From Podarcis bocagei (Eukaryota): DNA of 64,000 bases. A model generated the notes under the pieces. The model was given only the letters and a program-made list of their open reading frames with translations, was not told the DNA's origin and did not search any database. Below are positions 2,169 through 45,870 of this stretch, piece by piece. The stretch lies in assembly GCA_964188305.1 (NCBI GenBank), contig OZ076894.1. One strand, written 5' to 3'. Each line of letters opens with the position of its first letter. The stretch's first letter is position 1. A program made the translations under genes and the position numbers.

Positions 2169-5100
2169 CTATATGAAATAAAAAAAGGAAGAGGGGTGTT
2201 AAGAAACATTTTTGCTATTTTGTCTTTAAACATGCTTTTGTCTTTAAGCATGCTTACCACCTACTTCTTGTAACTAATAGATTCAAAGAAATTCATACTT
2301 AAGCAACTAACGAAACTTACAAATGAGTCTACAGTGAGGGGGGAAAGTATCTGAGCCCCTGCTAAATTTGCCTGTTTGCCCTCTGACAAAGAAAGGACCA
2401 GTCCATAATTTTAATGGTAGGTTTATTGTAGCTGTGAGAGACAGAATAATAACAGGAAAACCCCCAGAAACCCAGAAGACAAAAGTCAGAGATTGATGTG
2501 CATTATAATGAGTGAAATAAGTATTTGATCCCCTATCAACCAGCCAGATGTCAGGCTACCTGGTATCTTCACTGTATGTAACGAGCTAAGATTAGAAGCA
2601 CAAAAGACACCTGTCGACAGAAGCAATCAATCCAGCAGATTCCAAAGTAGCCACCAAGACCAAAGAGCTATCCAAGGATGTCAGGGACAAGAATGTAGAC
2701 CTGCACAAGGCTGGACTGGGCTACAAGACTATGGCCAAGCAGCTTGGTGAGAAGGTGACAACAGTTGGTGCAATAATTCGCAAATGAAAGAAACACAAAA
2801 TAACTGTCGGAACCTCCCTCGGTCTGGGGTCCATGCAAGATCTCATCTCGTGGAGTTGCAATGATCATGAGAACGGTGATGAAGCAGCCCAGAACTACAC
2901 AGGGGGGGACTTGTCAATGATCTCAGGGAAGCTGGGACCATAGTCACCATGAAAACAGTTGGTAACACACTACGCCACGAAGGACTGAGATCTTGTAGAG
3001 CCCGCAAGATCCCCTTGCTCAAGATAGCACATGTACAGGCCCGTCTGCAGTTTGCCCATGGGACATCTGAATGACACAGAGGAAAACTGGGTGAAAGTGT
3101 TGTGGTCAGATGAGACCAAAATAATCTCTTTGGCATCAATTCAACTTGCCGTGTTTGGAGGAGGAATGCTGCCTACGACCCCAAGAACACCATCGCCACC
3201 GTCAAACATGGAGGGGAACATATTATGCTTTGGGGGTGTTTTTCTGCTAAAGGGACAAGACACCTTCACCCCATCGAAGGGATGATGGACGGGACCATGT
3301 ACTGTCAAATCTTGGGTGAGCACCTCCTTCCCTCAGCCAGGGCATTGAAAATGGGTCGCGGATGGGTATTCCAGCATGACAATGACCCAAAACACACAAC
3401 AAACCATTTGAGAAGTGCTCAAACACACCCCTAATTTTAGTATAATAAAATTGCATTTGCCAGTCGCTGTCCAAGGAGATGCCACACACAAACATATATA
3501 TATCACCCGAGCCTCTGAGGGCAGAGGAACTACCAACAGTGCCCCCTCTGCTGATCTCAGCACCCAAAAGGGTATGTAAGAAGCATATTACACCCCTTTA
3601 AAATTGATAAATAACTGCACAACAAACTCTACAAGATTGGGTGACTTTCAAAAGCAAGGTCTTACAGACCACTATGTCTAAAGAAAAATAATCTCATTGG
3701 CTATGTCCAAGCCCTGGGTGGATTCCAACCTATTTACTTGATGGAAAGGCTGCTTCAAGGTGCAACAATAAGCAATATTTCAGCCTTACCTTCTTCTTCA
3801 GAGAAACGGGTCTTTCTGTTCTTTAAATATCTGCTCATTTCTCCATTGTGACACATCTCCAGTATCAGGTACACGTAGTTGCTATCTTCAAAGTAGTTAT
3901 ACAACTAGAAAAATGAAAACTAGTTTTAATATACATCAAAGTTTAGTTACCAGCATGTCAAGTTCTTTGTGTAAATTCTTACCTCAAGTATAGAGGGATG
4001 TTTTAGTTGACAATGTATCTTCACTTCATTTTGAACTCTTTGCACCATTCCAGCTTTGTGCATAGCCTTTTTGTCAATCTGAAAAGATTTTCTTTTTAAA
4101 ATTAAGCTCATATACACACACAAAAGTAATGATTTTTTTAAAATAATAATAATTCAGGAATAGATTTAAGCTAAATGAGGGTTGGAAAGAGTTTTATTGT
4201 TACATTTTATACTAATACCATTATTTCAGGTATGTCCAGCTTGCTTTAGTCTCATGTTAAGATAACAATTCTTCAGAAATCTGCTTGACACCAGCCTAGA
4301 AAGTAAGCCCAGCTAAATAAAATGGGACTTGCTTCCAAATAAACATAGGAATGGGGTTTAAATGTTGTATTATATCCCTACAGATATATATTGAACTTTC
4401 TCAACAAATACTGACTAATGGCCAAACTACTACACAGTATTTTAAAAGCATGGTTTACTCTTCAGTTTTGTTTTGTTTTTAATCAGAGGTGGATAACCTG
4501 CAACACTTCAGATATTGAACTGTAATTCCCATCATTCCTGACTGTTGGCCATGCTGACTGGGACTGATGGGAGTTGGAGTCCATAACATCTGGAGGGTCA
4601 CAAATTCAGAATCAGGATTGGGACCATAGTGCAGGTGGATATGTAAAAAGCAAACAAAATTCTTAGCACTTGTGCTGTGATCTTAATTAAAAATGTTGTT
4701 CTCTTGCTGCCGTTGATACCATTTTTTAAAAATCTCCCCTTATACTATGGTCCCAATCCTAATTTCCCCCTCTGCTGCTATTTAATATTTTCACAAAAAC
4801 AAAACATAAGACTCACCACATAGTGTGCAAAAGACACCTCTAATTTCACATTATAATGTGCCTTGACCCTGAAAGCTATTCTATACTAAAAACAATCATC
4901 TGTGCTGAGGAGTTTGACAGATGAAGCACTTCAGATGTTAAGTGCTTAAAAGACTGGACTGGTTTATGTGTTTGCACAGTCAAGTACAGGGCAAGCGCTA
5001 TATGGAGAAAACCTTTGCAGCCTGGAATTCAAATTGAGAGGTGAACAACAGAAATCAGGAACTAACAAGTTGTGGGAACATAAGGAGTAAGTTAGAAAGT

Positions 5101-8100
5101 AAAATATTGCATTTATTAGCTTACCCAGCAGCTTGGTATCCTATATTCTGGCTAAATTCAGTTACTTTGGTATCTGATCCAATGGCAACTTACCATTTTG
5201 ATGGCAACTTCTAGGCCTGTTTTCAGGGATACTGCTCTGTAGACTCCTGCAAAGGAGCCCTTCCCCAGAAGGTTCCCCACTTTGAAATCCTGAAAAAGAA
5301 AAAGCAATGGTCACTGCTCTTACTGCCTCCGCACCTTCCATCTGCACAGTTATGTATCAGCTACTGAGATAGTGTGGGGTGTCAAACATCTAATTGTTTT
5401 AATATGCTACCTGTAAAAAATTCCCTCTGAAATGTTTGCAGAGGAGATGTGATGAAATTTCACCTTGCCTTGTAATTTAAATAGCTGATATAAAGAGTCA
5501 CCTTGATTCAAATTAATCCCTGTTCTGAAACAAAAAAGACTTTAAGGAGAAAACTGTGAGGCTAGCTTGAAGTGTGGGAGGAAAGTACTGCTTCCACTTC
5601 CCAATGCAGTGGGGGTTAGTATGAAAATGCATCTAAAAGGAAAGAGGTTAAGGCTGCTTCTCCCTCCCACCTCCAAAGTTGTTTTTAAAAATGCATCCTG
5701 TTCATACCTTTCACATACCAACTCTCCCCTCATCTACCCTTATCCATGTTTTGCTCCCATCACTCCGCAGTTCCATATTTTACAGACTACTAGAAAGCCT
5801 GCTCTGAAATCCCTCTGGACTAGAGTCATGAATGTAGTATAAGAGGTAGGGCAAAAGGAAGCAAATACAGAGATGTGTCCACACCATACAAGTTCAGTCT
5901 TGCAGTTTCTGACTTTTACACGATACAAAAAACACAGGCTCTTCCACGTGTTTCACCTTTGCCCAGCTGAAACCTGGTTCCCTTGGGCAATCTTCGTACT
6001 TCTCCCCCTCCCCTCAAAAACCATCCTGTCCCCTTTCAGGATGCAGGTGGGAAAAGCACTTCAGTGCCCTGAGGGCCAGTTAAAGGGCGCCCTGGCCGCG
6101 CTCTCGCCCCGACGGCGCATGCTCCGGCAGAGGCGCTCCTCAGCAGAGACCGGCCGGCGGCAGGAGGCGGCTTTACCTGAATGGAGCTCTCCCAAGGCGA
6201 GCACTGGGACATGCCGGCGGCGGAGGCTGCGCCGGCGCTGGGCACCGGAGAGAGCAGGAGACTGAGCAGCCACTGCGGCATCGCGCTGCCAGGAACTCGC
6301 AGCCACTGAGGAGCTCGCAGCGCCGGGGCTCGCGGGCGGCTCTCGCCTTGCCGCGCTCTCTCCCGCTCCCGGGGGAGACGCGGCTTCCATCCCCCGTTGC
6401 CAAGGAAACGACCCGGGGGAGAGACGCCAGAGCGGAGGCACCCCCCCCCCCGCCCGCGCATCCCGCGCGCCGCCTTGCTGTTGCCGCCGCCGAAAACGGC
6501 AATCCTTAGCCCCCCGCCGCCCCCTCTTCGCGCGAGAGGGAGTAAGGTCCCCCGAGCGGTCCGGGGCTCGCTTCCGAGTACGCAGGGACAGGGCTGCACT
6601 GTTAAACTGTTTGCAAACTCATTGGCAAAAGAAAGGTGTCCTGCAGAGGCTTCGCCCCACTTTTAAGAAATACCAGCGAGCTGGGTTTCTCCTTTCTTCA
6701 ACGCAAGGCTCTTGGGGTTAGAAACTTTGCCCTCGTGGCAAAAACCGATTTTGCGTTTTAAGAGCGATGGATGTTTTCTATAGGGCTGGCCTTCCGTACC
6801 TATGTAGCCTTGCGGGTAGTGGAAGTCCAAGAGTTAGTGTCAAAAAACTAACGTCTTAATGTTCAAAGGATTTAGATATCTGCATATGTCACAAAAATTG
6901 TGGCATTTTCAAAACTGCCTGGGGAGTTTAGAAGTTGGCATCTACCTCCCCAATACCTTTCTAGGGGCAATGATTATATCATGAGGTACATGAATTAAAG
7001 CAAATTGTTATATTGCCAGCCTTTAGGGGACCAGCAGAATATTTGGAATTTTGAGTGTTTGATGGGCACCACCCCTTCCAACTGATTTGCCTTTTCCACT
7101 CCATCAACATAAAAAGAAAAGTGTCACCCACATACATTTATTTTCCAAGGGCTCTAGATCAATGTTGGTTCCAGTAGAATCAAAATAGATCCTCTTTCGT
7201 TTGCATGATTTAGCAACCCCCAGACTACCATGATGAGGATGACTGATAATATATTTTACTGTAATTAGTTTGCATATCACCTTATGAAGTTACCTAATGA
7301 TTTGGAAATGATGGGTGGTTTGGAGTTGAAGTAGGAGTGGGGAAACAGAGAGCATGTGCTGGGACTTCTGGAGGTTGTATTCCCCCCTGCCCCCACTGCC
7401 AATGTTTTCATAACTGATGAATATCAAAAAATATCATATTGGCCCGAATATAAGACCCACCCACAAATGCCGCACCTTTAAAATTCAAAGCTCCTCTGCC
7501 CTGGCGGCTCGGGGGAGGCTTGGGAGCAGTGGGCAGGCTGTGCATCGTTGCCTCGCACTCCCGGGCTGCTTCTGGGCGGCGGGGTGAGGGAGCTGCGCCG
7601 TTTTGCCGGTGGCGTAAGGTTACGAATATAAGCCACACTTTAACTTTTCACTGTCAGAATTTGGAAAAAAGTGTGGCTTATACTCAGGCCAAAATGGTAC
7701 ATAAATATTTATTCCTGAAGTAAAACAGGTCAACTTTTCTCAACACTTATTTCCTGTCGTCGTCATCATCAGAATAAACAAACTCTACAGGCATGTTTAC
7801 AGTTGCTTTTCTTGTAGTCCGTCTGTGAGTGTCTCAAATGCTCCCTATTCTCTTCCAAAAAAATTGATCACTAAAACTCAAAGTGACAGCAAACACAAGC
7901 ATATATTCTTGTATTCTAAACCTATTCCCTAACTCAATGAAGTGTTTTTAGTACTCTGATCCTTCAACATAGGAACATAAGAAGAGCCTGCTGGATTAGG
8001 CCAATGGCCCATCTAGCCCAACATTCTGTTCTCACAGTGGTCAACCAAACACCTGGGGGTCGCCCATATGCAGAACCCAGGCACAAGAGGACACTCCCCT

Positions 8101-10793
8101 CCTGAGGTTTCCAGCAACTACTATTCATAAGCATACAGCCTCCAACTGTAGAAGTCAACCATTAATAATCATAATAAAAAATTCCTTCCAGTAGCACCTT
8201 AAAGACCAACTAAGTTAGTTCTTGGTATGAGCTTTCGTGTGCATGCACGCTTCTTCAGATACACTGAAACACTGAAAGTTTCAGTGTATCTGAAGAAGTG
8301 TGCATGCACACGAAAGCTCATACCAAGAACTAACTTAGTTGGTCTTTAAGGTGCTACTGGAAGGAATTTTTTATTTTGACTATGGCAGACCAACACGGCT
8401 ACCTATCTGTAATTAATAATCATGATTATTAATGTTCCCAACGGTGCAGTACATAAAAGGAAAATCCATTATCTGTTTTGTTAGGTTAATTCTTGCCTGA
8501 AATATTAAGCATATTTCAAATGTGTATCAAAAATAAAAGTATAACCTACTGTTGAAACAATCATTTCAGTATAAATCATAATACTTGCCGGGCCATAGTT
8601 TACCATTACACACTTCAGAGAACACTTTAAAGATTAATTCATGTTAACTGCTTACAGCTTGATCCTTCCATGCTCACTTGAAAGTAAGCCCCATTGAGTT
8701 CAGTAGGTTTGACTTTCTAATAAGTGTGCACAGGGTTGCAAGCATGCAGGCTTATCCTACACATATTTAAAATCCCTCTGAATTTAGTGTTGCAGCTGTA
8801 ATCTCTTGAAGGCCAAGGTGAATACTTTTTCACATGATTAAGGGGGGGAAATCTATCACACACTTCCTCCAAAGCATACTTATGGGAGTACCCTAATTAT
8901 GCCTGGCTAGAATCATAGAATCATAGAGTTGGAAGAGACCACAAGGGCCATTGAGTCCAACCCCCTGCCAAGCAGGAAACACCATCAGAGCACTCCTGAC
9001 ATATGGTTGTCAAGCCTCTGCTTAAAGACCTCCAAAGTAGGAGACTCCACCACACTCCTTGGCAGCAAATTCCACTGTCGAACAGCTCTTACTGTCAGGA
9101 AGTTCTTCCTAATGTTTAGGTGGAATCTTCTTTCTTGTAGTTTGGATCCATTGCTCCGTGTCCGCTTCTCTGGAGCAGCAGAAAACAACCTTTCTCCCTC
9201 CTCTATGTGACATCCTTTTATATATTTGAACATGGCTATCATATCACCCCTTAACCTCCTCTTCTCCAGGCTAAACATGCCCAGCTCCCTTAGCCGTTCC
9301 TCATAAGGCATCGTTTCCAGGCCCTTGACCATTTTGGTTGCCCTCCTCTGGACACGTTCCAGTTTGTCAGTGTCCTTCTTGAATTGTGGTGCCCAGAACT
9401 GGACACAGTACTCCAGGTGAGGTCTGACCAGAGCAGAATACAGTGGCACTATTACTTCCCTTGATCTAGATGCTATACTCCTATTGATGCAGCCCAGAAT
9501 TGCATTGGCTTTTTTAGCTGGCTAATAGAGGAAATTTGGGGGAAGATGCTGCAAACCCAATTTGGCAACCAGCCAGACCTTGAATGTAAACAAAGCCTTC
9601 CTGAGAAAAATGTTATAACAGATGCAAGTTTTCAACACTTGTAGCAATTGTAGACCTTTTATCTGAGCTCTGTGAGCTAAAACATAACGATGCAGAATTT
9701 GGTAATGTTTCAAATTATTCATGCTGTTTGTCAAAGCACATTGGTTCACTTATTTATCATAGTAAAAAATTACTAGATACAAATGAGAATTTCTCAGGGA
9801 TAGATGCAGTCTCCTTCTTGAATTACAGGCTGCACAGATGATCATTACAAAGGCTACAATTAAAACCACATAACCATTTGCTTGGTCACCTGTGACTAAG
9901 AAATACCATCTTCAGGCAACTCTGTGTTCAGAGGGAACACCATACAAGGTAGAAGCATGGTGACAGGTATGCAGTACTAAGAATAATGTTGTGAGAGTGC
10001 TAATATGGACCAAAATTCATCCTTTATGAACCTCGTTAACTAGTCCGAAATAGCTACCACACCTTAGTTCTACAGAATCTATACAAACACGGATTAGAAT
10101 TCCCACATCAACCACAGACACACATCCTCGGTTAATGGCAAACATTCGAGTTGTGTAGAGTTCAGCCCTATGAACAACTTGTTCTTTTTAAGTCATACAC
10201 TAAAGGACATTAAATTTAAAGATGTTAAAGTGCAGAGCTGCCTGTCTATTCTGGCAGGGCTTCTGCACCTTGACAAACTGAGATGGGTACAAATTCTACA
10301 GATGGAGACTTCCCATTTTTAACGCCACCGTGATTATTGTGATCCGCTTTGAGCTCAGCATTTGTCGCTGGAAAAGCGGAAGACAAATATCAAAACAAAT
10401 CAAAGGCATTGTAAAAAAAAGAGCATAGGTTGGTTTTCTGCCTGCCACGCAGCTCTTAATGACACTAAAGCAGAGGTAGCATAGAAGCAGGGGACGTGCA
10501 ACCTGGTGCCATCCAAGGAAAAAGGAGGAAAGAGAAGCGACCTCATCCTGAACCAGCGAAGTGGGAGGGATCGAGTGTTTTAAGTCGCTGGTAAGGCGAA
10601 ACCCCGCCCAGCATCACGCCGCGCCAGTCAGCAAGCTGGACGGGAACACCTGTAACAACACCAAGCCCTGCTTCCTCCTCCACTGAGATATGGTTGGGCC
10701 CAGACTCCCCCTCCCCCGAGAATGGCTCGGTCCCCACCCACCCCGTAATGGCCGTTTCCGCACCTCAATCTTGTCGCCGATGCAGGTCGCCAT
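1139..10793 (-). CDS. PLK4: Polo-like kinase 4, 5' part (coding exons 1-5; gene continues beyond window start)
   Basis: Exons 10764-10793, 5194-5289, 3983-4078, 3790-3904, 1139-2168 join in phase with GT/AG: [29 protein letters not shown]...HRDLTLSN...DFGLA...[10 protein letters not shown], plus DSGNAT degron. Confidence 0.97.
2332..3399 (+). mobile_element. Tc1/mariner transposon, degenerate and 3'-truncated (IR/DR type)
   Basis: TA + CAGTG terminus; direct repeat AAGTAT(C/T)TGA(G/T)CCCCT near 2345 and 2519; frameshifted transposase motifs [26 protein letters not shown]. Confidence 0.9.
3790..3904 (-). CDS. PLK4: PLK4 exon 4
   Basis: 115 nt, [38 protein letters not shown]; AG/GT flanks. 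Confidence 0.95.
3983..4078 (-). CDS. PLK4: PLK4 exon 3
   Basis: 96 nt, [32 protein letters not shown]; AG/GT flanks. Confidence 0.95.
5194..5289 (-). CDS. PLK4: PLK4 exon 2 (Gly-rich loop, VAIK lysine)
   Basis: 96 nt, [32 protein letters not shown]; AG/GT flanks. Confidence 0.95.
6177..6212 (-). CDS. PLK4: Candidate alternative first coding exon of PLK4 ([12 protein letters not shown]; in-frame upstream AUG at 6281)
   Basis: gccgccggcATG context, 12 codons, CAG|GTAAAG donor in phase 0 matching the phase-0 acceptor of exon 2. Confidence 0.55.
6396..6409. promoter_or_regulatory. RFX X-box
   Basis: GTTGCCAAGGAAAC, one mismatch from the canonical GTTGCCATGGAAAC. Confidence 0.7.
7434..7697. 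mobile_element. Tc1/pogo-superfamily MITE
   Basis: TA flanks; imperfect TIRs (tcatattggcccgaatataag ... cttatactcaggccaaaatgg). Confidence 0.6.
7966..8155 (-). mobile_element. Old CR1-3'-related SINE/LINE fragment
   Basis: aacataggaacataagaagagcctgctggat...ggcccatctagccca tail typical of reptile CR1-related 3' ends. Confidence 0.5.
8173..8411. mobile_element. Penelope-like inverted-repeat insertion
   Basis: ~95-bp near-perfect inverted arms (8176-8270 / 8278-8372); flanked by 12-bp duplication attaataatcat (8161-8172, 8412-8423). Confidence 0.75.
8910..9517 (-). mobile_element. CR1 LINE, 5'-truncated
   Basis: ORF2 C-terminus [20 protein letters not shown]...LEKRRLRGD; (ATTCTATG)n tail; ctggcta flanking duplication. 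Confidence 0.95.
10764..10793 (-). CDS. PLK4: PLK4 canonical coding exon 1
   Basis: gccgccATGG Kozak; [10 protein letters not shown]|GTGCGG. Confidence 0.95.
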
Positions 10794-10799
10794 GGCGGC

Positions 10800-11180
10800 G
10801 GCGGCGCTCGCTCTTCCCCGCGTCACTCTCTTCCTTTCCTATAAGCTACAACATGGCCGGGTAATGCGCGTCTCTTTCGCCACCGTTGCCGCTCCGCAGG
10901 CCTCTCCCTCCCCGCTACGGGGGTCGGGGAGAAACCCCTTCCTTGAGGGGCTCCATTTTGAAAATCCCGCCCGTTACCAAAGCCGCCTTTGCGTCACTTG
11001 CGCATGACGCCATCGCGCCGTCCCCTCCGCCTATCCTCGGGCTCCTTGGGAGCGGGGCGGGGCGCCGTAAGGCTGTTTGCGGCCTCGGAGAAAAGTAGCG
11101 CAGAAGGGCGCGTGCGCGGTACAAGTCAGTGTTCTCCGCTAGGCTTGCTGAGGAAACCCGCCCTCTAGTGGCAAGGATGC
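10800..11180. promoter_or_regulatory. PLK4 CpG-island promoter with CDE/CHR, CRE-like, NRF1-like and GC-box elements
   Basis: Minus strand GGGCGG-GATT-TTCAAA (10957-10972); TGCGTCA 10990-10996; TGCGCATGACGC 10999-11010; GGGGCGGGGC ~11054; GCGCGTGCGC 11108-11117. The same element classes are known for mammalian PLK4. Confidence 0.8.
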
Positions 11181-14100
11181 GGAACGTCCATGTTTTCATT
11201 TGCTTTTCTTTGTTTGTGAAGAACGTAAGCAGAGCTCCGCTGGGTCTTAGTCATCCCGGCAGCCTTAGCCGACCAGACGCTGCTAAGGAAACCCAGGAGC
11301 AGGGCGTAAATGTCATAGCCCTCCTCCGGTCTCTTCCCACCGCATTGTTCCTTAAATGTACACTACGCAGCTCACCTCTCGCTATGCTGCCTCTTCATGC
11401 TAGCCTCCCTTACGGGGTTGCTGTGAAGATAAAAGAGAAAGAACCACCTGCCCTGCCTCGAGCTTCTTGGAGTAAAGGCAGGACGGAAATAATTCCACAC
11501 AGTCTGTGTCGCGAATTCCATAAGTTGACCATGTGTTGTGCAAAAGTACTTCTTTTGTGTTTCCTGAATCTTTTTTTTAAAAAAAAAGTTTTTCAACTTT
11601 TAACAACAATAAAAACAGTACAGAACTCAACAATGCGCTACCAAGCTGTTCTACAAATTCATGTCAGTATCCATACATAGTTCATTGCCTCAGTTACGGT
11701 GTATTGTTTCTTGCCACCCCAAACTCCCAAGTGATGCGACGTTCCAGGGGTCCCAGATTGCACCAAGCCACTTAATCCTCCTCAATCACCAAGGCTATCC
11801 AAAAACATAAGTTTCCTGAGGGACAGTTCGCGAAACAAAACAAATACAGTACAATAAAAATGAGTGCTGTAAAAACCATTACAAACTAAAAACACAGTTA
11901 AAACCCAAGCTCAAAATTAAGAGGGCTGTGCCATAATGAGACACAAGTTGTTTAAAAGCACTGAATAAACAAGATCCACCTGCAGCATAAAAGAGGGCAA
12001 AGATGAGTTCAGGCAAACGTCTCTGGGAACAGTGTGACGTAACCAAGATGCCACTACTAAAAAGATCCTGTCTCTGGTGGTTACTCAGATCACTTCATTT
12101 GGCAGCAACAATTGGCCTCTGGGGAAGAGAATAAGGTTCAGGTACATAAGTGGGTACATAAGGTACATTCAGGTAACCTGATTTATGAGAAGGAATTGCA
12201 ATCAGCTTTTTTTTCTTCCTCTGAATTAAATAATATTTATGCACTTTGAACAATGCTGTTGCTGTATGAACATCATGAATAAAAAACCCAGCACAGCACA
12301 TTGGAGTGTGAACACAGTCTAAGCCTCATTGATTTCAATGGTATTTCTTGCCAAACAAGGCTTGTAATCCTATTCATGCTTATTTGTGATTAAGCTCCAC
12401 TGAACTTGGAGGAATTATTTCCAAATAAACATTTATAGGACTGAACAAGCAATAAGTACATTTAGGAATGTGGACTTAAATTCACCTGGTTACGATTTTT
12501 GCTTTGGGAAGGGTTGTTTGTACATACATGCATGACCTCAAGGGGGTATCTGAGGGGGGGATTACAAACAAATCTTCAGAGTAAGTGTTTGGTAGAATTA
12601 TGAAGATTTACAGCACAATCATGAGCATGTTTACTCTGTAAAAAAAAAAAGTCTCACTGTGTTCAGCTGGGTTTACTCCCAGGTAAGTATGCATAGGATT
12701 GCAGTCTTAATATAGATAGATGGAATCCTATACATGTCTATGTAATCATATCTAAGAAATAGCAGAGGAGATGCACTGTGTTAATAGATTTTTCTTCTAA
12801 AAATGAGTATTGAATAGAACAGCAGCAACTCAAGGGCAAGACGGCTGGAAGAAATTGCTGACAGATATATTTCTCCCTCATTTGGTGGGCAAGGGAATCT
12901 TTTTTATGTTGTTCAATTTGACCTTTAATCTAGACTCCAGTGTCCTTTTCAGATGGCGTTTAACTGAATAAATGGTGAAGAGTATCTCTCAGCAGCTTAT
13001 CACACACTTGTGATTTCCTTTAGTGGACTTTTTAATTTCTCTTTATGACATGTACTTCTTTATTTTGCTCAGTTAATTTTTAGTGCATAATGTCAAACTA
13101 TCAGTATGAATTAGTGTAACACATTAATCCGTTCCCTTCCTTGCTTAGGCTGTGTACAGCTATTTGCTTGTCATAAATGCATTTGTTCAAGTTTCTTCCC
13201 TGTCAGCTGCTGTTTATTGCTGATTAGATTTCTCGCCGAGCTTGATAAAGAGATGAATCATTTTCAAGCTGTATCATCTTCGCTCTTTAATTTATTACAC
13301 ACATTTTGCCATTCCTGTCTCTTGTACTTAGAGTTAAATGCAGGAGGTCAGCAGCACAGGGCTAGTAGGTGCATCACTTACAATTCCTTTGGAAAGCCAT
13401 GCTGAGACTGTGAATAAGCGCTTCCACTTTTTATGGTCTGTCGTACCGTATCAGCAACAATGTTGAGATTTGTTAATTAGCAAGACGGTTGTGGAAAAAT
13501 TGCCTGTGTCTTTGAGTCTCTGAAAATTGACATTTCCGTTTTATTAGTCAAACCACTATGTTCTATGGAAGAATTTGCTAGCTTTTGTAGAAGCTTCAGA
13601 ACAGAGGCAGCTTTAGCCCAGTGCTCTGGGAAGACCCTCCCACACAGTTAGTATTCAAATAGCCCTTTTCATAAATACTGAAAGCAAGTCACAAATATTG
13701 TCTCAGCAATCTTTACAACATTCTCTAAAATATGCCAATATAAATATCTAGCCTCAGTGGTTTGCTAAAGGCCACACAACATATATACAACCAAGCTGAA
13801 ATTTGTGTCACGAATTTCTGCCTCATATGTCATGTTCTTCATTACAATATCATACCAACTCCACTGTGAATGTATTGGCCCTACAATTGTACGCACACTA
13901 TACCCTTAAAGCACATTCAAAGCACATTTCCTTCCCTAAAGAATTCTGGGCCTTGTATTTTATCTCTCGTAGCAACCCTTAACAAATTACAGTGCCCAGT
14001 ATTCTTTGAGTAGAACCATGTGCTTCAAAGATGTAGTGTGTGGGGAAGGAAGCATGGAACTAAGAGTGCAGATCAGTGGCTGCCATCCTTTGAGGACCCA

Positions 14101-17773: not shown

Positions 17774-20700
17774 GTGAGTTTAAGAAGTGAGGTATTATTT
17801 AAAGACTGTGATATTTACTGATAATAGGTGTAAGATCTTCCTACTGAGGCTAAAATGAAAAGGAGATTGCTTTTCTGCTGTCCTAACAATCATTATCATT
17901 CTCTCCCAACACATTCACTCATGACTGTATTTCTCAAAATGATGTCAGCCAAGTATAATTGTGATGAAATTAACTCTGACAAATGTATATATGCTTGTCT
18001 CTACACCGAACCAGACAGATTAAAGGATGATATGAGTTATGTGGGTCTATGGTATCGTCTAAGGCAGGCTTTCTCAACTTTTGGTCCTCAGATGTTGTTG
18101 GACTACAGCTTGCATCATCCCTGAGCGCTGGTCATGCTAGCTTGGGATGATGGGAATTGTAGTACAACAACAGCTGGGTTGAAAAAGTCTGGTTTAAGGA
18201 GCCAAAAGGTTGAACTATGAAATAAGAGAAGTATTTTAGCAGACCCTGAATTGGTAAATCCACAAAGGTTTGGGAGCATACCACTTATGTTCTTAACGTT
18301 CTGTCAAAGGATCAAGTCAAACACATGCATGCACAGAGGCTGACATGCAGAAGGGTTTATATGCATGTTGCTAACAAAAGGTGCTGCCTTCATTCTGAAA
18401 ATCGTGGGATAACCAGCCTCATATAACCACCATGCTTAAATGTAATTAATGCATCAAGGGGTTAAGGCCATTGACTAAGTTGTCCTGCCAGACTTAGCTC
18501 ACCTTGGGAGGGACTAGGTAATCAAGCCTTTGTTCCCCCTCACTCTACCTGAGAAGCACAGCATGTGAAGAGGCTTAGCTGGAGCAATCATGGCTCCAAC
18601 AAACCACTCAAGTTCCTATACCAATAATTTAGGAACGTTCACTACTGTAACCAAGCCAAGTTTTACTGCCTGTGCAACTTTTTCTGAATGCTGTATAGAA
18701 AAGTACACGAATCTGACCTTTGGAGAGTTTGTAAGTAAACCATTTATAATTCACCAAACATGTGGTCTTTTTCTATACTAGGGGAAGTTTTGAAACTCAC
18801 AAAAGAATAACAGCCTATATTTTCACACTTTACTTTGCTGCATGTTTTGTGTTTTTAAACTTCAGTTGAGGTTCTGTCACCAAATAATACTTGCCCCAAA
18901 CCTGGACCCTGGCATCCAAGGAATTCTCCTTTATGTATTTATTTTTTCCACAGCACAAAAAAGACAATGGGCATTTGTTTCAGAAGGATTAATAAAAGGC
19001 AGAAAAGAGGAAAAAGTGAGGAAATGGGGGGGAGGGGTGCATATAAAACAGGAAACAGAACAAGAAATTATCTTCAAGATGCATATAAAACAGGAAACAG
19101 AACAAGAAATTATCTATCAAGGCAGAGGCAATTTTTAAAAAACCCAGGGACATTTATTTGGAAATTTCCTGTGCCTTACTTTGAGAGTTCCTTGTTCAAT
19201 TAACATTTTTATGTGCTCATTGGAAGCTGCAACTGCTTTTAACTTGGTTGATGGCTACCACCACACCAACAAATCACACGTTTTTTCATAGGTTGTTACA
19301 TTCAGGGCTTTCTTATTGCTGCTGCTTCCATTAGAACAGCCTCTGGCCTGGTTCAAATATAATGCTAAACCACAGTGTGATTGAGTCAGGGGGAAGAGGC
19401 ATGTTAAAGCACTGTAGTCTGTTAATTTGGCTGTATTTTGGGGAGCGCCGGGCCATTTTTTTCGCTGGATTCTGCCCCACAGCTTATCAGACTCGGCAGC
19501 TGAATGATGCACATCTGCTGATAAATGAGAAGGTGGCAGCACATCCCCAGGCCCCTGCTCCAGTGGCTGACACATGGTTTTAGTAAACTATATTTTATTA
19601 AACCATGACTTTGTGTTCTATGCGAACCTAGCCCAGCGGCTTAACTATGGTTGCTATGTTTCAGTTTAGATCAGACTTTTGACCATGTTCTCTTTTGGAG
19701 TCTAGGATGAAAATGAAAACAAACTACAAAACAGGAGGCTAAAGTGGGTTTCCGACTCTATTTTAATGGCCCATTACAACAAGCTAATTATTGGAACCTG
19801 GTACGTAGTCAATTTCTGGGTTTCTAAGTATGATGGATATGCTACTACCATTTGAAAAGTGTCACAGAAATTTCACAAATTTGTTCCTAATTCTATAAAA
19901 TACGAACATATTTGTATAAAATGTGAACGGCAAACAAGGAAGAGAAAATGGTAGGCAACACACCTTGTTCATGTTGATGTTATCTTGTTTCATTATGGTT
20001 AATGCAAAGTATTTATAGTTTGCTTGGAGTAAATAGGCAGTAAACTATAAGGTGCTGTTCCAGGTACAAGCCACAGGACTCAGCTATACATCTGCGAAGA
20101 AAACGTTTTGAATGTGTTGTAAAGTGCAATATACAATTGTGATACTAGATGGAGTTGGCGAGCTATAGCAAATTCAATGCATTTTTCAAAACGATTAAAA
20201 AAAAAAGATTTTCACAGTGTTTTAAACATGTGTGTAGATTCTACCCGAGCCTCTGTGAGTCTGCTTCAGAATAAGTGGCCTGTAGGTATTTTAGTGTTAA
20301 TTCACTGCAGGAGCATACCTGTGGTGTTAGTGCTGACATTTTGGATTTTTCTGCTTATATGGTTGATTTCAATATGGCAGCACCCATTTCAGAACCATGG
20401 AGATTCAGGAGAGAAATGGTGTTGGAGTCTCTTGGAGTTCTGTGGCAAACCAGGAATCTTTTCTCATCCACACTTCTTGCCCTTTAGACATCTATTATAA
20501 TTCAGCTGATGTCAAGTAAAGAAAACAAATTATTGTTGTTTAATCAGTGCTAAATCTGAATCCACCATACAATGCAAAATGAATCTGTTGAGTTTTGTCT
20601 AACACAAGAACTAAAACAAGCTGTTTTTAAATTAAAGGTGGAGTGAAAATTGTAGTTTATTAACATCAACTGGCTTTTAAAAGCAACATTTACTGGGGAC

Positions 20701-23700: not shown

Positions 23701-25799
23701 CCGGTGTTTGTCCACAGACAGCTTCCGGGTCATGTGTCCAGCATGACTAAGCTGCTTCTGGTGAAACCAGAGCAGCGCACAGAAACACCGTCTACCTTCC
23801 CGCCGGAGCGGTACCTATTTATCTACTTGCACTTTTTGGCGTGCTTTCGAACTGCTAGGTGGGCAGGAGCTGGAACCAAACAACAGGAGCTCACCCCGTC
23901 GTGGGGATTCGAACCGCCGACCTTCTGATTGGCAAGCCCTAGGCTCAGTGGTTTAGACCACAGCGCCACCCGCTGTTCTTTTAACCAATAGTTAAAAATG
24001 ACCTTAGGCGTATGTTGTAGTGGTAATAATGCCGATTATAAATCTGGGTACTGATATGGTGGCATTTTGTTCAATACAGGGCTGTGTTAATATCCTGTTG
24101 ATCAGTTCTGTGGCAGAAACACTGAGGTACGTGACAGTTTGACCAGGCCTATGTGGATTTTAACACAAAGTGTTACCCTATTCCCAAGCACTCTTTCATC
24201 ATCTCTGGCATCTCCAGAGATGTGAAAGACTGTAGTCTAAAATGCTGGAGAGCCTCTACCAGTCTATGTGCACAATATTGAGGTAGATACACCATGCCTT
24301 GCTTCAGAAATGGCTTCCCTGTAATCCTTTAAAAAAAATAAAATGGTCATATCCACACCATACATTTAAAGCAAATGACTTAACCTAAAGAACCATGGGA
24401 ACTGTAGTTTCTTAAGGGTATAGGAATTGTAGCTTCAGGAACTATACTTCCCAGGATTATTTGGAGGAGGGGGTCCATGTGCTCTAAATGCCCATTACAG
24501 TGGTACCTCAGGTTACATACGCTTCAGGTTACAGACTCCGCTAACACAGATATAGTGCTTCAGGTTAAGAACTTTGCTTCAGGATGAGAACAGAAATCGT
24601 GCTCCGGCGGCACAGCAGCAGCAGGAGGCCCCATTAGCTAAAGTGGTGCTTCAGGTTAAGAACAGTTTCAGGTTAAGAACAGACCTCTGGAACGAATTAC
24701 GGTAAGTACTTAACCTGAGGTACCACTGTATTTGTGTTTTCAATATATGGTGTGGATGTGACCTTCCACTAACATGGCTGCAATCCACACTGGATGGGTT
24801 TGGATGATGTGGAGTCCTCAAAAAAGCATCACCAGCCTCTGTCCACAGAATGATGTCAAGTTCACTCCTCTCATGTGCACTGGTGGAGGAAGAGGAGTGC
24901 GGGGGCGTGATCCCAGTAGAGCAGTGTTTCCCAACCTTTTTTGGGCAAAGGCACACTTGTTTGATGAAAAAAATCTCGAGGCACACCACCATTACAGCCC
25001 CGTGACGTCAGCGCGCAGCGTCACGCCGGGAGGGACGCACGAAAGTGTAAGTTTCAATTTTTTCCCCTCCCCCTTGCCGGGGAACCTCCAAGCTTTGGGG
25101 GTGGGGGGGGGAGGAGGCAGCAAAGCGAGGCAGGAAGGATAGCGCGGCTTGGCTGGGTGAGCTTTGGCAGGGGCAGGGAATGAGAGCCACGAGGCGGGCG
25201 CTGCGGACGGAGGCGCTGCCCGCGAGCTTGCAGGCAGCCAGGCAGGCAGACGGCGAGAGCCCCGCGCTGGGCGGCCTCTCCTCACCGCCGCCGCCCCGCC
25301 TCTCGCCGCCTGACTCGCCCGCCTCCCTCCAGGCAACATCTCGCGGCACACTAGTGTGCCGCAGAACAGTGGTTGGGAAACACTGCAGTAGAGTACCATC
25401 GTGGCTGCCCCCTGCCTGCGCTGGGTGCCCCGCCCTCACAGGTAGTGCACTCCACCCCCAGGATGCACACCAGCCCCGCCCCCGCCTGCTCTCAACCCCC
25501 CCCCCCGGTGCCGAAAAATGAAGCTCCGCCACTGCTCGTGTGGAGCTCCCAATTCTGCCCACCAAATTGTGGGCAGAAGAATTCCCACCAGCGGTAGCCC
25601 ATTCTGCAGGTAGCAAGAGTGACAGTTATTTGCACATTTGTTGGCATGCTTCCTTAAAGCTCCTTTAAAACAAAACAAAATCTATTGGGGCATTATTGCA
25701 TCAAGACAAAGTTTGCGAGAATAATTTCCTAGATGCTAGTTCAGAATAGTATGTTTGGTGGTGAATCCAGTATTTTCTGGGTTTCATTCTTCCATCCTA

Positions 25800-43900: not shown

Positions 43901-45870
43901 GGACTGGAAAACAGCATAATTTTCAGAATATTTTTTTAAAAAAACTATTATGTTGGTGTCAGGGGTTTAGGAGCAGAGGCACGGGCAAGGGAGGAAACAG
44001 AGAGCGAAGGGGAGGAGGCAGAAGAAAAGATGAGTGATGACGACGACCCGAGATCTCCTAGTCTTTCCAGTGAATCAGAGGATTCACAGAAAGGAGCACC
44101 AGTGGCCAGGGCAAGGGGGGAGTCAAGGGGGGCACCCCAGGAAGATAGAGCCAGAAGGGACTCAGGGGGGAGCAGCTGGAAATCGGGACCAGCGTCACCG
44201 CCAGGAAGCAGGGAAGAGGAAGGGAGCCAGGGGGGAAGCGCTGGCAGCTCACCACAGGAGGGAGGGCATGAGTCAGGAGTGGCCACACCTCCATCGGGGA
44301 GCGAAGAAACGGTTAAGAGGAAGGTGGAAGGTTGGGCGCGCGCGCCAAGTTCAAATGCAGAGGAAGGCGGCGCAGTAAGCAGCCCCGAAAGGGAACCAGG
44401 TCCTAAAGCCCGGCGCAAGGAGGCAGGAGGGTCCGGGTCAGCGTCAGAAGAATCCCGGAAGGAGGAGGCCCCGGGGGGTAGAGGGACCCAGAGGAGGACA
44501 GTCAGGCGGAAAAGGTGGAGCAAGGCTAGGATATTAAGCTGGTGCTCACGGGGCGGAGACTCAGACGGAGCTTCGCCGATATAGCTACTAGACGTAGAGT
44601 TTGCGCGCAGCAGCGTGAGAATGGAAACTGTAATTCAATAAAGACTTTTACTTAATGATCGCTGGCTAGCGTGATCCTCTGTGAGCTAGGATCTTCAAGC
44701 AGCTCTGACAGTTGGCTTATCCTGGTTTTGCTAAAAAAATTTTGCCTGCTCCTCTTAGATTTTAAGAATGAGATGCTAGGTTCCTTACAGTTCAGCAGCT
44801 TCTAGCTCTTTGTAACAAAATAATTTCAAATCAAATTTACTTTTTATTTATGTTCTTTTAACATACCAAACATAATTTAATGGCTAAACACGTTATACAC
44901 AATACTTTGTTACTTTTGGAACCAAAAAATAACATTTGATCTGTAATATATGCTTTATAGAAAGTATTTTACTACCTTGCAACCATTTTACTACCTTTTC
45001 TCAGTCCTACTGCTACTATCGCCCTTTGCTTCAAAGCTAAAATTATACCGCACAATTGTGTCACCAACTCACCCCACAAGCCCTTTCTCCCTTCTGGGAA
45101 AGCATTGTAATTATAGTTGCTGTTTCACCAAAAACCTTTGTTTTCTGGGAAATCATTGCTCCCTGTGTACTTTGAGGGCACTTCTCTACCCAGCCTAAAT
45201 GACTGGTATGTTATCCCATAGATGATTTGGGACACTTGCACTTCAAAGATGGTAATAGATGATGAACTTGCTGAAGAACTGAAGCAAAGGCAGATAGACA
45301 GACTACACAGGTGTGTACAACTTGAATTTAAATCCTCTTTATTCACCGACAACATACTGGCCCATACTAGGTTAGCTTAACAGATATGCAAGTCTTGCAT
45401 GGCGTAATAGAATGCTGCACTCTATAAATACACAGGACAACTGAAAATTAAATTGTGTTGACAGATGAGTCCATACTCAAGTGCAGTCTCTGTGTGCGAT
45501 ACAGTAGCAACATGTATTTCTCAAAGCTGCTTTTTGCATCTACCATTCCCTTTGTGTGCCTTGTTAGAAGTTTCCCAGACTCCTAGCTATCCATATAATC
45601 TATTCTCTCCCCATTCCCTCATCTAATTTCCCAAATTTAAGAAGTCTTAATTTTATGTCATTTGGAAAAGTATCCCTCTTACAACTACTAGCCAGAAAGA
45701 AAACAGCACACCACTTATCTTTCAGATCAAAGCAGTTCCAGTGGAAACCTATTCAACATGATGCAAACCGAATAAATTCTTATCACTCTCTTCCACTGTG
45801 TGAGTTAGCCGACACACAGCTTGCCTTCCACAAACCAAATCTAGCAGCAGAACTTGATGACCCATTTTAG
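17585..45870 (+). CDS. WD40-repeat protein, WDR49/WDR95/WDR64/WDY-like; 25 coding exons, 2586 nt, ~861 aa from first resolved exon (Met at 17609)
   Basis: All 25 exons have AG/GT flanks and join in phase with no stop; many WD repeats (HKGVKTFDF...TGGLDRNIRLWN, LRGHTSPI...SLDSTIKVWD, GHKDDILCVA...SSFDGEVLIWN); true 5' end uncertain. Confidence 0.88.
18065..18191. mobile_element. Short hAT MITE
   Basis: caggctttctcaac / gttgaaaaagtctg termini; TSD gt(c/t)taagg. Confidence 0.65.
19038..19115. repeat. Tandem duplication, ~42-bp unit x2
   Basis: tgcatataaaacaggaaacagaacaagaaattatct occurs twice. Confidence 0.8.
19706..19800 (+). CDS. WD40 gene exon B
   Basis: DENENKLQNRRLKWVSDSILMAHYNKLIIGT; phase 0->2. 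Confidence 0.85.
20696..22453 (+). mobile_element. L1-mobilised non-autonomous retroelement (~1.75 kb) with a single 175-aa ORF
   Basis: 17-19-bp TSD aaaagcaacatttactg(gg) at a TTTT/AAAA site; CpG-rich 5' end; AATAAA 22427-22432 and A-rich tail; ORF 21438-21965; no RT motifs. Confidence 0.8.
22508..22600 (+). CDS. WD40 gene exon C
   Basis: NREIRLYELSNLEPYCQIVALETMPLCLDY; phase 2->2. Confidence 0.87.
23348..23393 (+). CDS. WD40 gene exon D
   Basis: VWGEGECVISYGDEQ|GTATGT; phase 2->0. Confidence 0.8.
23611..23972 (-). mobile_element. Sauria-type SINE, near full length
   Basis: A/B boxes, (ACCTTT)n tail, 12-bp TSD ctgttcttttaa. Confidence 0.92.
24080..24126 (+). CDS. WD40 gene exon E
   Basis: GCVNILLISSVAETL; phase 0->2. 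Confidence 0.83.
24498..24728. mobile_element. Tigger/pogo-like MITE
   Basis: TA TSD; TIR cagtggtacctcaggtta; near-identical copy at 29783. Confidence 0.9.
24922..25385. mobile_element. CpG-rich hAT MITE
   Basis: TIR cagtgtttcccaacc / ggttgggaaacactg; perfect 8-bp TSD cagtagag. Confidence 0.9.
25805..25850. repeat. (GT)23 microsatellite at a splice acceptor
   Basis: Read directly; ends 8 nt before exon F. Confidence 0.95.
25859..25976 (+). CDS. WD40 gene exon F
   Basis: NWTKYPPVEEIPTISANAIYEQENITFIRWKVHNDWVTK|GTAAGA. Confidence 0.87.
26321..26390 (+). CDS. WD40 gene exon G
   Basis: IQYIPSMESVISSSNDDCTALVI|GTAAGT; phase 0->1. Confidence 0.87.
26963..27268 (+). mobile_element. Rex1/Babar-type LINE 3' end
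   Basis: HPGNDVFQLLPSGRSYRVIKTRTMRLRNSFYPNAILVLN, then AATAAA and (gtatt/gtatc)n tail. Confidence 0.75.
27700..28417 (-). mobile_element. Solo LTR with nested MITE
   Basis: TGTTA...TAACA termini; 5-bp TSD tcttc; TATA and AATAAA on the minus strand; internal ~47-bp tandem duplication. Confidence 0.8.
27830..28252. mobile_element. Tigger/pogo-like MITE with internal tagcggct minisatellite
   Basis: TA TSD; TIR cagtggtgcc(t/c)cgcaagac. Confidence 0.88.
28462..28705 (+). CDS. WD40 gene exon H
   Basis: YVSRTKNVKHRL...FKVHKGVKTFDFCRESNILVTGGLDRNIRLWNPYVP; phase 1->2. Confidence 0.92.
29547..29652 (+). CDS. WD40 gene exon I
   Basis: WPIAILRGHTSPIGFLCIAHGSTNIFSVSLDSTIK|GTAAGG. Confidence 0.9.
29783..30008. 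mobile_element. Tigger/pogo-like MITE (second copy)
   Basis: Same family as 24498-24728; TA flanks. Confidence 0.9.
31145..31296 (+). CDS. WD40 gene exon J
   Basis: VWDIEDHSCLLTVMPKASQIRGEMEACYFSPDLQALYVAAETFGLLQFQY; phase 0->2. Confidence 0.88.
31509..31636. mobile_element. Short hAT MITE
   Basis: caggg...ccctg termini; TSD ct(a/c)tagag. Confidence 0.7.
32247..32349 (+). CDS. WD40 gene exon K
   Basis: ENQNQDSGTSHNKPIFCCQYNQQLQHVISCSEDS|GTAAGT. Confidence 0.88.
33220..33326 (+). CDS. WD40 gene exon L
   Basis: VIKMWDLKTGQLIVKVREAHGGAAVTCMALDTIGK; phase 0->2. Confidence 0.9.
34373..34452 (+). CDS. WD40 gene exon M
   Basis: LITGGADGSLKKWDSSTLGYMHTIKQ; phase 2->1. Confidence 0.87.
34537..34594 (+). 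CDS. WD40 gene exon N
   Basis: ISSADEVTACTYADLYDN; phase 1->2. Confidence 0.82.
35123..35369. mobile_element. Tigger/pogo-like MITE with duplicated left terminus
   Basis: acttacagtggtaccttgg twice in tandem; right end gaggtaccactg-ta. Confidence 0.75.
35630..35675 (+). CDS. WD40 gene exon O
   Basis: YIISVGWGRKISIFL|GTAAGT. Confidence 0.85.
36709..36768 (+). CDS. WD40 gene exon P
   Basis: DIDDEVVEGSYPQLDWIRSM|GTAAGA; phase 0->0. Confidence 0.78.
37063..37225 (+). CDS. WD40 gene exon Q
   Basis: EQGHKDDILCVASCPPHFLATSSFDGEVLIWNLVSGHLCSRLH...|GTGAGT. Confidence 0.88.
38287..38376 (+). CDS. WD40 gene exon R
   Basis: DLTINKIIFLLSRLEKKKTAAMLVASGPR; phase 1->1. Confidence 0.85.
39669..39727 (+). 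CDS. WD40 gene exon S
   Basis: YIAFWNIYGRGSLFAYFSS|GTAAGT. Confidence 0.85.
40891..40966. repeat. Compound microsatellite (GTAT)n(TAT)n
   Basis: Read directly; just upstream of the exon T acceptor. Confidence 0.95.
40981..41122 (+). CDS. WD40 gene exon T
   Basis: SKERSTVSDMAVDDKDFLLCAGDQLGFLHIWNIAEYAINGPEAKPPV; phase 0->1. Confidence 0.88.
41224..41263 (+). CDS. WD40 gene exon U
   Basis: LHSWNTHNCSIT|GTAAGA; phase 1->2. Confidence 0.82.
41925..42013 (+). CDS. WD40 gene exon V
   Basis: ISLMNEHQLLLTTSLDYNAKLWSLKGEYI|GTAAGA. Confidence 0.87.
43239..43393 (+). CDS. WD40 gene exon W
   Basis: TFGQREPWNIKEKSSWG...KSKMDAE|GTAGGA; completes the YIGTFGQ motif. Confidence 0.83.
43957..44710 (+). 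mobile_element. Solo LTR (754 bp, probably Gypsy-like) containing a long ORF
   Basis: TGTCAG...CTGACA inverted termini; 5-bp TSD gttgg; AATAAA 44637-44642; ORF 44030-44584. Confidence 0.85.
45222..45310 (+). CDS. WD40 gene penultimate exon
   Basis: MIWDTCTSKMVIDDELAEELKQRQIDRLH; phase 0->2 bridges exon W and the last exon. Confidence 0.7.
45726..45870 (+). CDS. WD40 gene last coding exon
   Basis: SKQFQWKP...SYHSLPLCEL...KPNLAAELDDPF*; CAG acceptor, phase 2. Confidence 0.78.

Follow-up and report, generated by a model that had tools for sequence, protein, structure and literature searches.

The stretch of DNA analysed here comprises 64 kb of the Podarcis bocagei genome (contig OZ076894.1 of assembly GCA_964188305.1) without runs of Ns, and we refer to this whole stretch as the window. 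It carries PLK4 on the minus strand, and intron 1 of this gene contains a single-copy CpG island at positions 6036-6620. The original prediction, made from the letters of the window alone, had placed an alternative first coding exon and a second, RFX-driven promoter inside this island. Our analysis suggests that PLK4 has an old alternative first coding exon (hereafter exon 1b) and that the island is its squamate copy, with the leader and the proximal promoter included; we put the probability of this reading at about 0.62. The predicted exon is orthologous to the first coding exon of a Naja naja gene model and of the Lagopus muta isoform X1, and its frame and donor are kept in six species. As it is conserved in other species we take the feature to be real in the evolutionary sense, and we infer that it is also spliced in the lizard. 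The arrangement had been thought to be undescribed. We found no paper on exon 1b, yet the exon is already present in public gene models.

On the minus strand of the window the exons follow in the order 1a (10793-10764), 1b (6281-6177) and exon 2 (from 5289). The coding part of the canonical exon 1a (10764-10793, minus strand) comprises 10 codons followed by a GTGCGG donor, RNA contigs carry its leader to about 10941-10968, and it sits ∼4.4 kb upstream of the island. Exon 2 follows ttttcag and contributes 32 codons ending in AIKM; its acceptor at 5289 is compatible in phase 0, as had been claimed, and would serve 1a and 1b alike, and we set the extent of the exon at 5194-5289 (minus strand). 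All elements that had been listed for the island are present, namely the X-box-like imperfect palindrome GTTTCCTTGGCAAC (14 bp, 6396-6409, minus strand), an ATG at 6212, 12 codons and a phase-0 donor. The ATG at 6212 had been proposed as the start codon. However, gccgccggcATG at 6212-6210 is an internal methionine of a longer frame, 12 codons from the donor, and the start common to the other species is the in-frame ATG further upstream at 6281-6279. From this ATG the coding part of exon 1b (6177-6281, minus strand) comprises 35 codons, homologous to the N-terminus of the Naja model and to an open reading frame (ORF) of Erythrolamprus reginae. The proposed 5' splice site GTAAAG (6171-6176, minus strand; CAG|GTAAAG) leaves 6177 as the last exon base. 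It scored 3.6 compared to 2.9 for the canonical donor with an approximate donor matrix. Upstream of the coding part lies a conserved block (6282-6402, minus strand), the putative leader or proximal promoter of exon 1b, which falls within a 230-nt match to Naja. The multi-species alignment revealed a conserved motif in this block, TCCCCCGGGAGCGG (6363-6376, minus strand; pattern TCCCNNGGGAGCGG), and the leader also contains an out-of-frame ATG at 6390-6388.

Sauropsid full-length PLK4 proteins were obtained by a search of representatives with the large kinase exon and by cluster look-ups, and the loci were then compared. The first search for full-length proteins used a pangolin representative and returned mammals only, and the Logan contigs that carry the large kinase exon did not extend as far as intron 1. 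Positions 6402-6174 of the window match positions 9886-10105 of the Naja naja locus (L009) with 75.7% identity over 230 nt (E = 1e-36), and the Smith-Waterman score was 169 compared to 19.5 ± 2.2 for shuffled sequences. In the whole 5' region of PLK4 the window and the cobra have no more than four conserved blocks in common: the canonical promoter with exon 1a, a piece of 68 nt, the stretch 6402-6174 and exon 2. The similarity collapses directly after GGTA, i.e. at the proposed donor. The cobra gene model (KAG8134628.1, P0447) starts in the homologous exon and reads 34 residues before |DFKVG. The lizard frame from the ATG at 6281, which is homologous to the Naja start, reads 35 residues before |DFKVG, and the cobra peptide is identical to it at 25 of the 35 positions. 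In the first 12 codons lizard and cobra differ by three synonymous and no non-synonymous changes. The canonical MATCIG exon lies 5.4 kb upstream of 1b in Naja, and it likewise lies upstream in the window. The full gene of Erythrolamprus reginae has a 35-residue homologous exon between exons 1a and 2, and both ATG and donor are kept in the two snakes, in agreement with the conservation among squamates that had been expected of a functional exon.

Two further observations were made in the snake loci. The E. reginae locus (L014, 10001-17741 and 21814-27741) contains a tandem partial duplicate of the 5' part of PLK4 upstream of the full gene; it is annotated as 'PLK4-like' (311 aa), keeps exons 1a and 2 and is without the exon 1b block. 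Within intron 1, positions 9814-9880 match Naja L009 7159-7225 (68 nt, 78% identity, E = 3e-7); a shorter second query gave no match.

The wider comparison covered six species: this lizard, Naja, Erythrolamprus, Lagopus, a Colinus contig and Hirundo. The RefSeq isoform X1 of Lagopus muta (XP_048799485.1, P0434) starts in the intron-1 exon MPGTALSGPAALCLRGPECSVR, and the model on the Colinus contig starts with MPCEALRGPEGSLQ. At the same position Hirundo rustica is open for MRRGWVCGAAGPRRRALESSVQ|GTA, where GAGAGCTCCGTCCAG|GTA parallels GAGAGCTCCATTCAG|GTA of the lizard. The order 1a, 1b, exon 2 on the gene strand is the same in the two snakes, Lagopus, the Colinus contig and Hirundo. A homologous ATG in frame with a phase-0 G|GTA donor was found in six of six species (lengths 105, 102, 105, 66, 42 and 66 nt), the bird peptides being shorter with 14-22 codons. 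Across the six species there are at least four independent length changes, all of them multiples of three, and G|GTA is invariant. The elements of the block also follow in the same order throughout: the palindrome at the X-box position, TCCCNNGGGAGCGG, a GGGCGGC run, CAGTG, the ATG and finally GAG-nGn-TCn-nTn-nAG|GTA. The motif TCCCNNGGGAGCGG is present in the lizard, Naja, Lagopus and the Colinus contig, with one mismatch in Erythrolamprus and as a spacing variant in Hirundo. The squamates share the peptide end E-x-S-[IVL]-[QKR] and a Met-Pro start with two of the three birds; the third bird, Hirundo, has MR as its first residues. Compared to the Naja and Lagopus models the lizard exon thus agrees in position, strand, phase-0 G|GTA, homologous ATG, upstream palindrome and TCCCNNGGGAGCGG, and differs in that its palindrome is shifted towards an RFX-like sequence. 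The Colinus virginianus contig (AWGT02002502.1, L010) carries a protein flagged UNVERIFIED_CONTAM by NCBI; its PLK4 5' region is bird-like and close to Lagopus.

The palindrome occupies the aligned position in all six species. It reads GTTTCCTTGGCAAC in the lizard, GCTGCTATGGAAGC in Naja and Erythrolamprus, GCTGCCATGGCAGC in Lagopus and Hirundo and ACTGCTATGGCAGC in the Colinus contig, and it is identical in Lagopus and Hirundo despite their differing flanks. Judged by the alignment the element is clearly constrained, and its ancestral form would have had C at position 2 and G at position 13.

With respect to composition the island stands out from its surroundings. It has a GC content of 0.706, an observed/expected CpG ratio of 0.89 and 65 CpGs, compared to ratios of 0.16-0.29 in the flanks, and passes the usual thresholds for CpG islands (GC ≥0.55, ratio ≥0.6, length ≥500 bp). 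It had been pointed out that a match to a multicopy repeat would speak against a promoter. We rejected this explanation: there is no second copy within 5000-12000 in the self-comparison of the window and no excess depth in the RNA contig sets, where the island reaches 0-2.4 and the transposons at 7936-9527 reach thousands to tens of thousands. Likewise, we rejected a structured RNA, as Rfam gave no match, a tRNA, of which the window contains none, and a gene of its own. The frame of exon 1b is open for 187 codons, stops being rare in GC-rich DNA; the ORF is absent from the protein collection and has no homologues.

We then contrasted the island with the canonical promoter. The latter contains an element resembling a combined cell cycle-dependent element and cell cycle genes homology region (CDE/CHR), GGGCGG-ATTT-TCAAA, at 10957-10972 on the minus strand (pattern scan; GGGCGG at 10972, TTCAAA at 10962), and cyclic AMP response element (CRE)-like TGACGC/GCGTCA sites at 10991-11010. 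The CDE/CHR region is 90% identical to birds over 29 nt, and the element is also found in the cat; the CRE-like sites are likewise shared with birds and cat. The CDE/CHR-like element is of the type described for mammalian Plk4, where CRE and NRF1 activate the promoter and DREAM represses it through CDE/CHR (PMC3874167). The island is a CpG-island promoter candidate of the same gene on the same strand. It carries GC-box matches (GGGCGG/CCGCCC), but the pattern scan found no CHR variant in 6100-6700 and no CRE in the island, and there is no detectable similarity to the canonical promoter. The idea of a duplicated first exon, which had been read from a loose parallel between the two peptides, did not hold: the local alignment of the island with the canonical promoter and exon 1a (10700-11400) scored 26 compared to 23.0 ± 2.6 for shuffled sequences, and 29 of 200 shuffles scored as high. 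The leaders differ as well. Upstream ATGs at 10956 and 10854 in the canonical leader fit the upstream open reading frames (uORFs) that are conserved and control PLK4 translation (PMC9296005), whereas the exon 1b leader has one upstream ATG, at 6390, whose inclusion in the mRNA depends on the start site. This ATG is present in Naja and absent from Erythrolamprus and the birds. Use of a different leader would alter the translational control.

If exon 1b is used as we propose, transcription would start inside the island, near or just downstream of the palindrome (6396-6409) and TCCCNNGGGAGCGG (6363-6376). A separate start site or promoter in the island is plausible in view of its CpG composition, the GC boxes, the conserved upstream motifs and an RNA contig which ends at 6410. 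The ATG at 6281 would serve as the start codon, and the one at 6212 would do so in the case of leaky scanning or of a start site located further downstream. From 6177 the 35 (or 12) codons would then be joined in phase 0 to exon 2 at 5289. In the product a different short N-terminal peptide would replace the canonical 10 residues and the whole kinase domain would be kept. Because the kinase domain would be unchanged and only the short N-terminus swapped, the main consequence would be regulatory. The transcript would come from a promoter without CDE/CHR and carry a leader unlike the canonical uORF-bearing one. A regulatory difference between exons 1a and 1b is therefore plausible, and exon 1b may be tissue-specific.

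The dosage of PLK4 sets the number of centrioles, and its known controls are the DREAM-repressed CDE/CHR promoter, the uORFs of the leader and the self-destruction of the kinase. If our reading is true, PLK4 would have an additional point of control in the form of a second first exon that is conserved, has a CpG-island promoter to itself and carries a different leader, and a tissue-specific exon 1b could explain the supply of PLK4 where the canonical promoter is repressed. A more far-reaching version is that exon 1b marks a second PLK4 promoter which has been kept for >250 million years in sauropsids, possibly with a mammalian counterpart, and which supplies PLK4 outside the cell-cycle and translational brakes (e.g. 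in germ cells or centriole-amplifying cells) via a palindrome-binding factor, in the lizard possibly RFX. We regard this version as unlikely.

Several observations weigh against exon 1b, the first group of which concerns the RNA. We compared the window from 5150 to 11100 with three RNA contig sets of a congener (X1, X4 and X3) and with one set of raw reads (X23). The congener is ∼2% diverged, and its DNA runs contain 0.52 of the 31-letter words of the window. The canonical 5288/10763 joint was assembled in sets X1, X4 and X3 at depths of 15.2, 2.8 and 139.3, respectively, with the exon 2 pieces covering 5194-5288 joined to 10763. The predicted 6177-5289 joint was absent from the contigs of all three sets. 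In set X1 a single contig (248 nt, depth 2.4) covers the island. It is colinear with 6166-6410 and thus appears to be unspliced, as it continues along the genome for 11 nt beyond the donor. Similarly thin contigs were found on plain intron sequence (6800-7011), and set X3, which has the highest PLK4 depth, shows zero depth on the island. The raw reads X23 had no PLK4 coverage and are uninformative either way. Contigs lose rare variants and the tissues of the RNA runs are not stated, which limits this negative result; it is an absence of evidence, yet it argues against abundant use of exon 1b in the lizard.

The second group concerns the conservation itself. Over the whole of exon 1b we counted three synonymous and nine non-synonymous codon changes between lizard and cobra. 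Outside the first 12 codons and the ESSI[QK] end, constraint at the protein level therefore appears weak, and DNA or RNA, not the protein, may be the target of much of the conservation. The similarity between lizard and bird DNA is borderline, as 16 of 300 and 21 of 300 shuffles reached the observed score; the orthology with birds is at motif level only, and it is motif order, the position and a common exon end that speak for it. Birds could also reach the exon by an alternative donor from the canonical start site and not by a promoter of its own. Furthermore, the cobra and Colinus gene models may be weak evidence, since predictors favour GC-rich open frames.

These points lend themselves to a different explanation, in which the block owes its conservation to a cis-regulatory role, as an enhancer or promoter-proximal element of PLK4 within the intron, perhaps with a short unspliced RNA, the ORF is not translated in the lizard, and the cobra and bird models are artefacts or rare by-products. 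We consider this explanation fairly improbable. It would account for the missing spliced joint and for the sole contig over the exon being unspliced, for a ratio of non-synonymous to synonymous changes near 1 between lizard and cobra, and for the fact that the most conserved part of the block is the non-coding stretch 6395-6350 with its palindromic motifs. A GC-rich frame can also stay open for 187 codons simply by the rarity of stops, and the ORF is without a protein homologue. On the other hand, the frame survives the independent length changes in six species, for which we estimate a chance of ∼1 in 80. The donor is invariant and the similarity drops exactly there, the peptide end and the Met-Pro start recur in the squamates and in two of three birds, and a RefSeq isoform uses the exon. 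Even if the block is a regulatory element only, it would still be a candidate intronic control region of a dosage-critical gene.

The original prediction in its full form goes beyond an alternative exon: RFX factors acting through the X-box at 6396-6409 would drive exon 1b and supply PLK4 to post-mitotic multiciliated or spermatogenic cells free of DREAM repression. This appears improbable to us, and RFX control with a role in ciliogenesis or spermiogenesis is speculative. Among all 14-mers of the 64 kb, GTTTCCTTGGCAAC alone reaches the palindromic RFX consensus GTTGCCATGGCAAC with no more than two mismatches (12 of 14 positions match; by our own arithmetic ∼0.2 such sites are expected per window), its half-site GGCAAC is perfect and the island is without a CHR. 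As in the X-box promoters of ciliary genes, the site is a 14-bp imperfect palindrome with one perfect RGYAAC half; the CpG island around it is promoter-like, and an ATG follows ∼115 nt downstream. It also fits the nematode-type X-box pattern GTHNYY..RRNAAC except for the spacer. However, the strict vertebrate pattern GTNRCC-N0-3-RGYAAC has no match in the window, and one half of GTTTCCTTGGCAAC carries a T in its fourth position. RFX motifs are most constrained at positions 2 and 13 (T2 and A13). The snakes and birds have C and G at these positions and the RFX-like bases occur in the lizard only; hence RFX control is possible in the lizard lineage and is not the conserved explanation. The position of the predicted X-box was thus kept in all six species, but its RFX-like bases were not. 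The conserved element is GCTGCYATGGMAGC and may bind a factor other than RFX. The neighbouring palindrome TCCCNNGGGA (6363-6376) we take to resemble an EBF/COE-type site.

The literature points in the same direction. The induction of Plk4 in multiciliated cells has been credited to Multicilin-E2F4/5 (PMC4083089), and a review places the RFX factors on genes for ciliary transport and basal-body anchoring (PMC10689204). The main text of the RFX2 target paper does not mention plk4, and we did not find PLK4 as a reported RFX target in these papers. The cat has no site resembling the X-box anywhere in its PLK4 locus. We also considered the enrichment of GTTTCCTYRGCAR (4 occurrences in the window vs 0.03 expected) and GTTTCCTNNGCA (5 vs 0.27), all with unrelated flanks, and rejected it as support for RFX. 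The site at 54326, the one extra site whose context was mapped, consists of a pyrimidine tract with CAG directly upstream of the 3' exons of HSPA4L, and those at 11145 and 11280 read alike; the likely cause is intron-end sequence, and these are probably 3'-splice-site-like sequences.

That we are looking at an orphan CpG island evolving neutrally, or at what is left of a duplicated canonical promoter and exon 1, with motif, ATG and donor arising by chance, is very improbable given the strong conservation in two snakes, the recognisable counterpart in three birds and the lack of similarity to the canonical promoter or exon 1a, even though matches to the motif at up to three mismatches are not enriched in the window and, of the 10 GT sites in intron 1 that score at least as high as the canonical donor, two have an upstream ATG in phase 0, which makes a donor with an in-frame ATG unremarkable and weak evidence when taken alone.

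Mammals have an alternative N-terminus in a comparable place. Among the RefSeq predictions and UniRef entries retrieved, nine mammalian PLK4 sequences start with M[LSP]S[TA][PLA]D[TAL][CS][CYS][IV]E. This variant of 11 residues, e.g. MLSTPDTC[CS]IE, was seen in P0168, P0173, P0233, P0248, P0250, P0258, P0266 and P0461; examples are Sagmatias obliquidens X1 (P0168) and Equus caballus XP_023492345.1 (P0461). In the cat locus (L008) it lies at 6528-6560, in intron 1. Like exon 1b it is spliced in phase 0 to DFKVG, and its peptide ends on small residues followed by I/V and E/Q, similar to ESSIQ. Unlike exon 1b the cat exon is outside the CpG island, and the cat is without the palindrome. No homology at the DNA level was detectable: the six-species profile had no match in the cat locus and the local alignment was not significant. 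The mammalian exon is analogous to the sauropsid exon 1b in position and phase. Our search found no literature on the mammalian N-terminus. Gene-prediction pipelines have picked up the exon in snakes, in birds and, analogously, in mammals.

The distance between the two first exons differs considerably between lineages. In birds 1a and 1b are 300-370 nt apart and lie within one CpG island. Intron 1 measures 5.4-5.5 kb in the window and the snakes, where it contains multicopy elements, and ∼660 nt in the cat. In the window the multicopy transposon insertions between 1a and 1b span 7936-9527, with many variants, RNA contig depths of hundreds to tens of thousands and very high depth in all the RNA runs. 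Most simply this is read as a single ancestral promoter island that was split by the insertion of transposons, leaving 1a and 1b about 4.4-5 kb apart in today's squamates. A 'second island' would be seen in squamates because the insertions have separated 1a and 1b, and it could be annotated as derived from a single ancestral promoter island. Also in the multicopy stretch, the arms 8165-8270 and 8278-8383 make up a near-perfect hairpin with 97% complementarity, and the 154-aa ORF at 8985-9449 inside the repeat has no Pfam match.

Outside the PLK4 region, the stretch 11200-51400 contains large ORFs without a Pfam match and CpG-island-like spots near 20700, 24900-25300 and 44200-44500. The last HSPA4L exons are located at 54179-51379 on the minus strand, ∼40 kb from PLK4 compared to a few kb in the two snakes.

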